From: Piromyces finnis finn
Lineage: Eukaryota > Fungi > Neocallimastigomycota
Reading direction: 5' to 3'
Assembly: GCA_002104945.1 (NCBI GenBank)
Contig: MCFH01000035.1
Span: 124,001-188,000, forward strand
Length of the DNA: 64,000 nt
Part shown: one piece after another, positions 33,918-51,644 of the stretch
Numbering within the stretch: the first letter of the stretch is position 1
How the letters are laid out: each line of letters opens with the position of its first letter
Notes under the pieces: generated by a model
The model's input: the letters and a program-made list of their open reading frames with translations, nothing else
Database searches by the model: none
What the model was told of the DNA's origin: nothing
Position numbers and translations under genes: made by a program

Positions 33918-35132
33918 TTACATAATAAATTCTTCATTCATATTCATTGGATGACTAGTAGAAAGCTGTGGAATTTGCTTGAAATTCTTTTCTCTCATAA
34001 CTTGTCTAATTTGAGTTAATAATTGAGAGTAAGTTAAGTTTGGATTTTCATTTAAAACAGTAATAAATGCATATGACATAGCACCAGTAGCTTGATTATT
34101 AATTTTAGCATCAGCAGAAGTTTGATTATCTCTACAACCAGAGAATTGAATTACATCAGCATCATGCTTTCTTTTTTCTATTATAGCTTGATTATTTGTT
34201 TTGTTACCACTTAAATTTGAAAAATCAATTGATCCATCAAAAAGGCCAAGAAGGGAACTAGTAATCATAGCTTGATCACCTTGAATAAAACTACCAACAA
34301 TATTGACAGCTTTTTTGAAGATTTCCTTACGAACATCATTTTCAATAACTTCAATGGATCCATCACATTGGTAGGTGTATGGAAGATCCATAACAGTACC
34401 AGAGTGACAGGAATCAAAAATGGCAGTTAATCTACAACCTTTTGGTAATGGTGTAACTAAATTTTCATAAATCTCATCATCAAGAATTTGACCCTTTGAT
34501 TGAAAATCAAGTGGTATTATTGTTTCATCAAAGCCATCAGTTTCATCACCTTCTTTATCTGTAGCTGTACCACCATGACCAGAATAGTGGAAGAATAAGG
34601 AATCACCTGGTTGAGCGCCTTCAACAAGCCATTTCATAGCTTCAATAATATTATGATAAGTTGGTTTCATTATTGGATCATCTTGTTCATCAGTTAAATA
34701 TAAGCAATTTTGGAAACCATATCTTCTGCACATTAATTCAGAAATATTTCTAACATCATTAATACATCCCTTAAGTTCAGCTGATGTACCTGTATAGTTA
34801 ATACCAATGAAAAGAGCCTTTTTATTACCATCACAAGCAGATCTTACAAATTCATCACCATCGTTTTCATAGTAAAAATTATCAACATCTCTATTCCATA
34901 AATTTTCTTCTCTAATTTTCTCATCAACGGTTCGATTAAATTCTTGATTCTCACCATCCCAGGTATTAAAATTAATATCAAATCTCTTTCTATCACGCTT
35001 AACTTCTTGATTCATATTTTGCATAACACTGAATTGGTCTATTCCTTGTTGTAAGAAATCTTGAAATCCACCATTTTCAAAGCTTTGTTGAAAACTTTCA
35101 AAGCTTCGTTGAAAGAAATCTTGAATAGTCAT
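33918..35132 (-). CDS. MCA1: Type I metacaspase, copy 1 (Phe/Gln-rich N-terminus), intronless
   Basis: KKALFIGINY, LKGCINDV, FFHYSGHGG (catalytic His), DSCHSGTVMDLPY (catalytic Cys), QFSGCRDNQTSADA, QIPQLSTSHP. The likely start is Met 35132 (MTIQDFF). Confidence 0.96.
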   Translation of the reverse strand: MTIQDFFQRSFESFQQSFENGGFQDFLQQGIDQFSVMQNMNQEVKRDRKRFDINFNTWDGENQEFNRTVDEKIREENLWNRDVDNFYYENDGDEFVRSACDGNKKALFIGINYTGTSAELKGCINDVRNISELMCRRYGFQNCLYLTDEQDDPIMKPTYHNIIEAMKWLVEGAQPGDSLFFHYSGHGGTATDKEGDETDGFDETIIPLDFQSKGQILDDEIYENLVTPLPKGCRLTAIFDSCHSGTVMDLPYTYQCDGSIEVIENDVRKEIFKKAVNIVGSFIQGDQAMITSSLLGLFDGSIDFSNLSGNKTNNQAIIEKRKHDADVIQFSGCRDNQTSADAKINNQATGAMSYAFITVLNENPNLTYSQLLTQIRQVMREKNFKQIPQLSTSHPMNMNEEFIM

Positions 35133-35434
35133 TTTATTTATTATTAAAACTAACATGTAAAAATAAAAATATATACAATATTTATTTGCAAAAAATTAAT
35201 TGTTAATATTTAAGTTATTATTATTATTATTATTATTAATAAATAACAATGTTTTTTAATTTATAAATTTGAAAAAGTATAATTATTTAAATTATCTTAA
35301 TAATAATGTGTTATTTATTAGTTTAAATCATACATTCAATATTGAATAATTTCTAATGATTTTTAACATTTGCTAAATTAATAATTATTAAATATGTAAT
35401 ATTTTAATTCTTAATGGATGTTAGATTTAATTAT

Positions 35435-35518
35435 ATTATTATTATTATTATTATTATTATTATTATTATTATTATTATTATTATTATTATTATTATTATT
35501 ATTATTATTATTATTATC
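35435..35518. repeat. (TTA)n microsatellite
   Basis: Direct reading of the sequence; spurious poly-Leu ORF 35418-35600. Confidence 0.93.
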
Positions 35519-48974: not shown

Positions 48975-50498
48975 TTTATTTATTATTTAATATTTTTTTT
49001 ATTATTTAATATATTTATAAAAAAAAAATAATAGAAAGAAAGAAAAAACTGTATTTATATAATAAAAAATTATTATGGAATGTATCAATCATGATTAAAG
49101 TTATAATTTTACATTATTAACTTGGTTCACTTGGCAATTAATCCAATTATAAAAATCTTATTTGCTGTCATTTAATTAATGATGTTAAATTTATAAAAAT
49201 TTTTCCTGGATACATTTAATTAAAATTATGAAAAATTTAAAAAAAAAAAAGTATCAATGCTAATAAAAATGAATATGTTGCAATATGAAAAATTAGCTTA
49301 AAATAGGTTAAAGTAGAAGATTATATTGTAAAAGATGATTATTTTAATATTATCAAAGGGTTATAATAACCCTTATGAGTAATAATTTAAATTAAAATTT
49401 AAAATAAAAAGAAAAAAAATGTCTCACTTTGTATAATAAATTTAAAAATGTTAAAATAACATTTATTAAGACATTCATTTATAACTATAAATAAAAATAA
49501 ATATTTTTAAAATTTTATTATCACAATTTTATATGATGGTTATTTCCTATCTATTCATAAAAAAAAAAAGTTAATATATATATTTAACATATTTTATGTA
49601 CTAATATCATAGCATTTTTAATTAGTTCATTTTATCTAATAATAACTCATTCAAATTAATAATAATTAATAAAGAAAAGAAAAAAAAATGAAACATAAAA
49701 AAATAAAGATTAAAAAAAAATTATACTTACTTGATAAAATGAACATAAAATAACAATATATAAATCTGATTTTATATTCACTATTTTATTAAAATATTAA
49801 TAAAACATTTGAAAACTATATTTTTAAAATGTTAAAATATTAAAAGCCAGCCCCTTATTAAAAAAAATGATAATAATAAAATTTATAGTTTAAGTATTTT
49901 TGTAGATTAAGGTCAAAAAATTTTTTATTTTTCCAAAATGTTTATGAAAATATAAAGAAAATATATATATTATACTTGTAAAAAAATTAATGCGTATAGT
50001 TTTTCTTTTATTTTTATTTAAAATGTAAAATATTGCGTTTAATATTTACTAATTTATAACATATAATTTATATATTATTAAAAAAAAAAAAAAAAAATTC
50101 TCTGTTTATATTCATTTACTGTTAATAATTCATTTTTAATATTGTTTCAGTTTTGTATTATATTAAGTATTATAAATATAATTTATGATAGACATTATCT
50201 TTTATATTATTAATAATAAAATATATATTGTTTATAAATAATAGAAAATAGCTACTGAAAAATATTTTTAAAAAAAATGGTTCTATATAATATATTTTAG
50301 ATATAAAAATTAAGGAATTAAGGAATAAAATCAATAATAAACTTGTTGAATTTAATTTTATATTATTACTCTTTATCCATATTAATATTTTTTGATTTAT
50401 AAATATAATAGTGCAAATGCTAGGATCTAATGATATTGCTATTTATACTAAAAATATTATTAAAAAAATTACGTAAAAAACAAAGATTTTTATGTTGT

Positions 50499-51644
50499 TT
50501 ACATTGAGAACTTTTCGTTCATGTTTAATGGACGACTAGTAGAAAGTTGTGGAATTTGAGTAAATTTCTTTTCAGCCATAATTTGCTTAATATTAGCTAA
50601 CATTTCGGTATAGGTGTATTCCTTTTCTTCATTTAATAAAGTAATTATAGCTAAGGACATAGCACCAGTAGCAACATTACCAATTTTGGCATCAGCACTA
50701 GTTTGATTATCTCTACAACCTGAGAATTGAATAACATCAGCAAGATTTTGTCTTTGCTTAAGAACTTCTGGATCTACACCATTAGAAGCTGCTTTTCTAA
50801 GAGAACCATCGAAAATACTCTTAAGAGAATCAGCAATTCTATCTTTATTACCACTATTAATACTATCAATAACATTTGAAGTTTTCTTGAAAATTTCCTT
50901 ACGGACATCATTTTCAATAACTTCGACCTTTCCTTGACATTGATAAGTGTATGGGAGATCCATAACAGTGCCAGAGTGACAAGAATCGAAAATAGCTGTT
51001 AATCTACAACCACGTGGTAATGGTGCAACTAAATTTTCGTAAATATCATCATCAAGAATTTGACCATTAGTGAGGTAATCACATGGTAAAATGGTTTCAT
51101 CGAATCCATCAACTTCATCATTATCCTTATCTTTAGCAGTACCACCATGACCACTGTAATGGAAGAATAAAGAATCACCTGCTTTAGCATCCTTAGTAAG
51201 CCATTTCATTCCATTAATAATGTTTTGATAAGTTGGCTTCTTTCTTTCATCAGATTGATCATCAGTTAAAATTATAGCTTGAGTGATACCAAATTTCTTA
51301 GCAACTAATTGAGAGATATTCTTAACATCGTTAATACAACCATTAAGTGGACTTTTTCCTCCGATATAATTAATACCGATGTAAAGAGCCTTCTTATTAC
51401 CACTACAATCAGATCTTGTAAATTTATCTCCTTCTCTTTCATTGTAGAATTTTTCAACATCATTATTCCAAACTTCTTGACTCTTAATTTGGTTATGAAT
51501 GTGATTAGTTAATTTTGAAGTACTATTATCAGTGTTAACTTTAATCTTATATCTCTTAGTTTCTTTGATAACTTGACCATTGACAATTTTTGTTGTGGTT
51601 TTAATAACCTCCTTATATGGAGCTTCGGTAGTAATAGTAGACAT
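50499..51644 (-). CDS. MCA1: Type I metacaspase, copy 6 (short Thr/Lys/Ile-rich N-terminus), intronless
   Basis: Likely start ATG 51644 (MSTITTEAP); HYSGHG and DSCHSG intact; QIPQLSTSRP. Confidence 0.96.
   Translation of the reverse strand: MSTITTEAPYKEVIKTTTKIVNGQVIKETKRYKIKVNTDNSTSKLTNHIHNQIKSQEVWNNDVEKFYNEREGDKFTRSDCSGNKKALYIGINYIGGKSPLNGCINDVKNISQLVAKKFGITQAIILTDDQSDERKKPTYQNIINGMKWLTKDAKAGDSLFFHYSGHGGTAKDKDNDEVDGFDETILPCDYLTNGQILDDDIYENLVAPLPRGCRLTAIFDSCHSGTVMDLPYTYQCQGKVEVIENDVRKEIFKKTSNVIDSINSGNKDRIADSLKSIFDGSLRKAASNGVDPEVLKQRQNLADVIQFSGCRDNQTSADAKIGNVATGAMSLAIITLLNEEKEYTYTEMLANIKQIMAEKKFTQIPQLSTSRPLNMNEKFSM

Follow-up and report, generated by a model that had tools for sequence, protein, structure and literature searches.

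An old tandem array of six type I metacaspase genes in an anaerobic gut fungus, with a conserved protease core and gene-specific N-terminal tails

Our picture of fungal metacaspases rests almost wholly on species with one or two copies, the number carried by ascomycete models (PMC5613156), and a single enzyme is credited with pro-death as well as pro-survival, aggregate-clearing roles, as in yeast, Candida and Magnaporthe (PMC12914765, among other sources). Here we describe six co-oriented metacaspase genes in the genome of an anaerobic gut fungus, within a 64-kb stretch of contig MCFH01000035.1 that we call, at its full length, the window. The copies are named MCA1 to MCA6 by rising coordinate; all lie on the minus strand, so that transcription runs from MCA6 to MCA1, and their open reading frames (ORFs) of 359-496 amino acids fall within 33918-51695. 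We consider it likely that they form an ancient tandem family of the Yca1/Mca1 type, duplicated before the gut-fungal genera separated and since subfunctionalized, with one protease core carried under different targeting tails.

The closest described systems are yeast Yca1 (4F6O) and the Candida glabrata metacaspase (7QP0/7QP1), which the window proteins resemble in fold, in the order of p20 and p10, in the His/Cys dyad, in the acidic S1 pocket and in the Asp residues of the Ca2+ site (E 1e-84, about 50% identity). The long disordered p20-p10 loop is also shared, as is, in MCA1 and MCA4, a Gln-rich N-terminus with QxxQ-like spacing. The yeasts, however, have one gene where the window has six linked paralogs. 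Furthermore, four of the six window tails, unlike that of Yca1, are not Gln-rich (Gly/Met, Gly/Pro/Phe, Thr/Lys and no tail, respectively), a junction motif specific to gut fungi is present, and the K331/K334 processing sites of Yca1 are not kept in position. Trypanosoma brucei MCA2 (TbMCA2; 4AF8/4AFP) is likewise a type I enzyme whose Ca2+-binding Asp and S1 residues align with ours; its N-terminal segment is believed to act as a gate to the active site and it is one of five family members, but identity is about 35%, its L6 loop is short and its N-terminal domain is not of low complexity. The tandem metacaspases of plants (such as SotubMC4-6 of potato) also arose by local duplication and are under purifying selection (PMC6370574), but they are type II enzymes without prodomains, whereas the window copies belong to type I and have their main differences in the prodomains. 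The ascomycete two-copy sets (PaMCA1/2 of Podospora, MCA-1A/1B of Neurospora, CasA/B of Aspergillus, MoMca1/2 of Magnaporthe) consist of Mca1-type paralogs tied to ageing, stress death and aggregate clearance, in contrast to six copies in one array here, to which some gut fungi add a seventh, divergent lineage. To our knowledge, there is no report of an ascomycete pair forming an array. Since tandem duplication of metacaspases is known from plants, the locus extends known biology without introducing a new principle; it is an old expansion of a known family, made of conventional proteins, and not a new kind of system.

The array is well delimited. Six-frame translation gives ORFs at 33918-35156 (MCA1), 37101-38591 (MCA2), 41129-42613 (MCA3), 44100-45320 (MCA4), 47895-48974 (MCA5) and 50499-51695 (MCA6). 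For MCA2 (496 aa), MCA3 (494 aa), MCA4 (406 aa) and MCA5 (359 aa) the coding sequence is the whole ORF, with a Pfam PF00656 match in each. MCA1 probably starts at M9 (35132), as judged from the N-terminus of its Piromyces sp. E2 ortholog and from a public model of 404 aa (P0039), giving a coding sequence of the same length at 33918-35132. MCA6 encodes 381 aa from an ATG at 51644 (50499-51644), with an in-frame stop just upstream, and its start is matched in position by the orthologs of Piromyces sp. E2 and P. finnis. A preliminary description of this locus had placed six co-oriented metacaspase genes at 33918-51644 with no other gene between them, its end coordinate being the MCA6 ATG rather than the end of the ORF; ORF, Pfam, tblastn and spacer searches all bear this out, and chance can be set aside as its source. 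Tblastn with the six proteins recovered exactly six metacaspase loci in the window and no further or broken copies or fragments. The spacers (1.5-2.6 kb, 11-15% G+C) contain only low-complexity pseudo-ORFs, and six-frame ORF, transfer RNA (tRNA) and Rfam searches of them yielded no coding gene, no tRNA and no Rfam family.

The protease core is intact in every copy. Pfam PF00656 (Peptidase_C14) matches all six proteins over nearly the full profile (E from 1e-43, for MCA1, to 8e-38), with scores of 131-150 bits against a gathering cut-off of 21.4, and Pfam detected no other domain in them, whether NACHT/NB-ARC, WD40/TPR, amyloid or another sensor. In a six-way alignment, in which overall identity to MCA1 is 56-68%, the HYSGHG motif of the catalytic His, the DSCHSG motif of the catalytic Cys and the acidic D-x3-DE-x-DG[FY]DE are invariant, so that the catalytic motifs are, as first described, complete throughout and none of the copies is a pseudogene. 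The catalytic Cys aligns with C276 of Yca1 (mutated in 4F6P) and C213 of TbMCA2 (4AFR). The S1 residues of TbMCA2 are Cys92, Asp95, Ser156 and Asp211, and its Ca2+ ligands are Asp173, Asp189, Asp190 and Asp220 (McLuskey and Mottram, PMC4357240). The former correspond to C128, D131, S189 and D245 of MCA4, an acidic pocket that is invariant in 73/73 aligned sequences; the latter correspond to D207, D223, D224 and D254, invariant in 6/6 copies. The preliminary description had equated the acidic stretch with the Ca2+-binding loop. The stretch is indeed invariant, but only its last Asp aligns with a TbMCA2 ligand; the other three, also invariant, lie downstream (DD, and the D of MDLPY).

By sequence, the closest solved structures are Yca1 (4F6O, E 2e-84 with MCA4) and the C. 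glabrata metacaspase (7QP0), followed by TbMCA2 and then plant type II enzymes. MCA4 was modelled with AlphaFold from an alignment of 73 sequences (mean predicted local distance difference test score, pLDDT, 81.9), and the model gave Foldseek template-modelling (TM) scores of 0.82-0.88, normalized by target, against the yeast metacaspases (Yca1, C. glabrata). The layout is that of type I, with p20 before p10, no long type II linker and, between the two, a loop of some 60-85 residues; the corresponding L6 loop of Yca1 has 59 residues (PMC4357240). On the strength of domain order, p20-p10 loop and N-terminal extension, the six copies are assigned to the type I metacaspases of the Yca1/Mca1 kind, and all are predicted to carry out Ca2+-dependent proteolysis with Arg/Lys specificity at P1.

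The same array is present in other gut fungi. On contig KZ150839.1 of Piromyces sp. E2, six co-oriented metacaspase genes stand in the same order and are followed by a SWEET (MtN3_slv) gene. In Anaeromyces robustus the orthologs of MCA6, MCA5 and MCA4 lie on one contig and those of MCA3, MCA2 and MCA1 on another, and one of these trios has the downstream flank seen after MCA1 in the window, namely a SWEET gene, a proteasome alpha subunit and a protein kinase. Two Neocallimastix genomes hold orthologs of at least MCA6, MCA5 and MCA4 within the 20 kb examined. The cluster, initially thought unusual, is so beside the one or two copies of ascomycete models, but is common to related gut fungi; the caveat that such arrays might be both common and described there thus holds for their presence in Piromyces sp. 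E2, Anaeromyces and Neocallimastix, whereas no paper describing them was found in the literature searched.

The phylogeny agrees with the gene order. In a maximum-likelihood tree (LG+C20, 33 sequences, with zoopagomycete and entomophthoralean fungi and a yeast as outgroups), the gut-fungal metacaspases form one clade with 100/100 support. Within it are six orthogroups, each spanning genera and none lost in two genera, and each window gene is sister to the Piromyces sp. E2 gene at the same array position (78-90% identity). On these comparisons, Piromyces sp. E2 is the nearest sequenced relative of the gut fungus that carries the window. Individual orthologs include those of MCA1 (Piromyces sp. 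E2 L011:14021-15238, 87% identity; A. robustus L001:10001-11200), MCA2 (88% in Piromyces sp. E2; also found in A. robustus) and MCA3 (Piromyces sp. E2 L007:9614-11113, 90%; A. robustus L004:9713-11050). The six cross-genus orthogroups indicate that the duplications are older than the genus splits. The adjacent genes MCA1, MCA2 and MCA3 fall in a single clade, the pattern that stepwise duplication in place would produce, and the shortest branch in the tree is that of MCA4. A horizontal origin was rejected, since the gut-fungal clade groups with the Mca1 proteins of fungi, to which it is about 50-56% identical.

All copies are under purifying selection. The ratio of nonsynonymous to synonymous substitution rates (dN/dS) of the core, measured between the window and Piromyces sp. 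E2 orthologs, is 0.11-0.16 for the five pairs MCA2-MCA6; for MCA1, measured against its A. robustus ortholog, it is 0.31. Between paralogs the ratio is 0.26-0.61, with nucleotide divergence of 13-35% and cores that are 57-83% identical. Paralog dS was not used for dating because codon usage is extremely AT-biased and gene conversion is probable.

In contrast to the shared core, the N-terminal tails are specific to each orthogroup and kept as such across three genera, in line with the earlier suggestion of a diversified family with a shared core and different inputs. In five copies, 27-130 residues precede the junction motif; in MCA5, 8 do. The tail of MCA1 (about 48 aa) is Gln/Phe-rich, and that of MCA4 is Asn/Gln-rich with 'GIQQG' repeats; in these two and their orthologs Gln makes up 17-31% of residues with QxxQ-like spacing, whereas MCA2, MCA3, MCA5 and MCA6 are not Gln-rich. 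The MCA2 tail (about 125 aa) is a low-complexity segment rich in Gly, Met, Arg, Pro and Gln, with Met at 14-27% across orthologs and the same composition in Piromyces sp. E2 and A. robustus. MCA3 has a Gly/Pro/Phe-rich tail of about 130 aa, a module repeated in its Piromyces sp. E2 and A. robustus orthologs, and MCA5 has almost none. The MCA6 tail is Thr/Lys/Val-rich, with 'APYKEVIKTTTK' in the window, Piromyces sp. E2 and P. finnis, and longer Thr-rich tracts in Anaeromyces and Neocallimastix.

Two of the tails are encoded by tandem DNA repeats: that of MCA2 by a 51-nt unit present 5.9 times (38237-38542, 95% unit identity) and that of MCA3 by 45-nt and 54-nt units at 42224-42601, the 45-nt unit present 3.6 times at 96% identity. 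Judged by their sequence, these repeats are young, and that tail composition is kept nonetheless points to selection on composition. The N-terminal dN/dS of MCA3, MCA4 and MCA6 against Piromyces sp. E2 is 0.07-0.14. Most Arg residues of the MCA2 tail (38217-38542) precede Pro (GRPG), likewise in the Piromyces sp. E2 and A. robustus orthologs; this pairing may be a way for an Arg-specific protease to spare its own tail.

Tail and core are joined in all copies by the junction motif, which reads [KRGN]R[YF]x[IVYF]x[IVF]N, its Arg being invariant, and then NLW.D..FY. MCA5 also keeps this junction segment, of about 50 residues, before the first core strand. The segment is modelled in MCA4 as two helices (pLDDT 76-93) preceding the first core strand (residue 109), and the junction Arg, R56, lies 53 residues ahead of that strand. 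Yca1 is reported to be autoprocessed after R72, K86, K331 and K334; its N-terminal site, K86, precedes the core by about 50 residues (PMC4357240; PMC12914765). The likeness in spacing suggests that the prodomain might be released at the invariant junction Arg. Our guess for a processing site in the p20-p10 linker is a conserved basic KRK patch just before p10.

Transcription of MCA4, MCA5 and MCA6 is shown by contigs of four small transcript-like runs from one organism. For MCA4, 94-97% of sampled words are present in the four runs. Contigs were compared with the window over 47500-52300: the whole MCA5 ORF is spanned without interruption by 1.2-kb contigs in all four runs (47756-48998), and MCA6 is covered throughout. 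Contigs of three runs cross a splice joint at 51647/52203, with 98 letters on the short side. It defines a GT-AG intron of 555 nt in the 5′ untranslated region (5′UTR) of MCA6, at 51648-52202 on the minus strand, with its end 3 nt short of the ATG; exon 1, which is non-coding, runs from 52203 to past 52300. The spacers carry no long contig pieces and depth is near zero in some spacer bins, which, together with the splice joint, shows that the four runs are RNA. In A. robustus, Joint Genome Institute contigs that exactly encode the MCA1 and MCA4 orthologs are also spliced just upstream of the ATG (L001:8794-9963 vs. L002; L008:9416-9985 vs. L009), and the introns in the three cases measure about 0.55-1.2 kb. 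A 5′UTR intron combined with an intron-free coding sequence thus looks like a family trait, and the recurrent intron may be a regulatory feature of the whole family.

The reading we favor is that a single ancestral fungal Mca1 gene would have been duplicated locally before the extant gut-fungal genera diverged. The six copies would have been retained by purifying selection as Ca2+-activated Arg/Lys cysteine proteases with a nearly identical core, the junction Arg and the KRK linker patch serving as putative autoprocessing sites. The Gln-rich N-terminus of Yca1 sends the protein to insoluble aggregates (PMC4357240), and, by analogy, the N-terminal modules would bring the shared protease core into contact with distinct partners, aggregates or condensates; the Gly-rich tails may steer other copies to different assemblies. 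Of the six, MCA4 is the best candidate for having kept the ancestral role, given its short branch and Gln-rich tail. The physiological role would lie in proteostasis and/or in developmental or stress-induced autolysis. The six genes are candidate regulators of the short, autolysis-prone gut-fungal life cycle, a limit on biotechnological use. The array is also a natural prodomain series, one core having stood under six tails since before the genus split, and lets the role of the prodomain in targeting, gating or activation be asked.

Several observations weigh against this reading or narrow it. Over about 360 nt in the middle of the core, MCA2 and MCA3 are closer to each other within a genome than to their orthologs, both in the window and in Piromyces sp. 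E2; identity between the two reaches 100% over 120 nt, vs. 94% to the ortholog. This suggests patchy, recurrent gene conversion between these neighbors, and part of the apparent conservation may be an effect of it. The array may not be universal among gut fungi, as P. finnis has, among the matches listed, only an MCA6-like gene and a divergent copy. The outgroups of the tree include no chytrid. Where Yca1 has its sites K331 and K334, the aligned segment of the window copies, 'FDGS', is non-basic. Lastly, expression of MCA1-MCA3 has indirect support: the four runs contain 30-37% of the sampled words of the 9.1-kb stretch containing these genes, of which the three ORFs make up 46%. These words amount to about 3.4 kb, exceeding any two of the three ORFs summed, a partial match that would fit the expression of all three with poorly assembled repeats.

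The alternative that survives best, though we judge it unlikely, is a module for regulated cell death or defense, on which the preliminary description had laid its emphasis. Here, the six enzymes would execute programmed death on different danger signals: antagonistic bacteria or methanogens, viruses, oxygen, or the autolysis of sporangia that follows zoospore release. Stressed and ageing fungi do employ metacaspases in cell death (PMC5613156; PMC12914765), and the differing N-termini could serve as input domains. PF00656 is nonetheless the sole domain detected, with no NLR-type or other sensor domain fused to it and no NLR/STAND-type gene found among the neighbors, which are housekeeping genes (SWEET, proteasome subunit, kinase) and not a defense island. 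Selection is purifying rather than diversifying, and 1:1 orthologs with core dN/dS values of 0.11-0.16 and stable synteny contrast with the rapid turnover expected of immune families, and Mca1 of yeast and Magnaporthe also clears aggregates.

A more speculative version of the targeting idea, to which we give quite a small chance, is a 'prodomain code' in which the one core is sent to different condensates and the Met-rich MCA2 tail acts as an oxidation switch, Met oxidation altering self-association. If true, a metacaspase of an obligate anaerobe would be activated on exposure to oxygen or reactive oxygen species, for instance to set off proteostasis or autolysis, and the conserved 'RP' dipeptides of the MCA2 tail might guard against self-cleavage.

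It is very improbable that the array simply serves dosage, with interchangeable copies kept for high protease output and tails that are neutral low-complexity drift. Such a view would account for paralog cores that are 57-83% identical with every functional residue invariant, for the signs of MCA2-MCA3 gene conversion and for the youth of the tail repeats. It fits poorly with tails whose type matches the orthogroup and whose composition, and partly sequence, are kept across three genera, with N-terminal dN/dS values well under 1 for MCA3, MCA4 and MCA6, and with the persistence of six distinct orthogroups in two genera without loss. Conservation of the tails within each orthogroup makes pure redundancy unlikely. 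An assembly artefact, or collapsed or expanded haplotypes, a doubt raised in the preliminary description, can be dismissed almost entirely: repeat-rich, AT-rich genomes are error-prone in general, but no specific sign of error was found, the paralogs differ by 13-35% in nucleotides with no similarity shared between their flanks (blastn of flanking DNA detected none among promoters or terminators), the gene order recurs in the independent assembly of another species, Piromyces sp. E2, and MCA4, MCA5 and MCA6 are each matched individually by transcript contigs.

Four of the six proteins (MCA1, MCA2, MCA5 and MCA6) occur in a public collection as unnamed predictions from the genome of the window, each a singleton in exact-sequence clusters, and the exact products of the MCA3 and MCA4 ORFs are not in this collection of 15 billion proteins; for these two, public gene models may be lacking or have other boundaries. 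Databases label the orthologs of other gut fungi 'metacaspase' or 'hypothetical'. A literature search for metacaspases in Neocallimastigomycota found none, only a mycovirus review being matched, and neither the top-ranked anaerobic-fungus papers nor a stress-gene catalogue of gut fungi mentions metacaspases or caspases.

The divergent seventh lineage has a long branch (0.39) nested in the MCA6 clade and is absent from the window. Its members are L010:7622-8731 of P. finnis (minus strand), P0086 of Piromyces sp. E2, on another contig, and P0083. Locus L010 contains only a head-to-head pair, formed by the divergent copy and the MCA6-like gene, and the divergent copy adjoins a CotH/CBM10 gene. 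In Piromyces sp. E2, L003:7859-10000 has an assembly gap (a run of N) directly upstream of the MCA5 ortholog, where naive extension of the ORF gives a false product of 1074 aa.

Directly downstream of the array lies the SWEET (MtN3_slv) gene (30323-31428, minus strand), a synteny anchor common to A. robustus and Piromyces sp. E2. Beyond it are the proteasome alpha subunit (28092-29683) and the protein kinase (24709-26788), both on the plus strand and syntenic with A. robustus contig MCFG01000266.1, and an exon of the NatB non-catalytic subunit MDM20 (21418-22080, plus strand). Upstream, past MCA6, no synteny was found with any of the gut-fungal loci compared. Three long ORFs of the window have no Pfam match at E <= 0.01: 60301-62055 (minus, 584 aa), 105-1781 (plus, 558 aa) and 7845-9008 (minus, 387 aa). 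The G+C content of the window is 12-27%, and the spacer between MCA4 and MCA5 holds a (TAT)n microsatellite of about 272 units (about 820 bp) followed by (TAG)12, at 46467-47283, which gives rise to long spurious ORFs on both strands, including a poly-Ile ORF of 303 aa.

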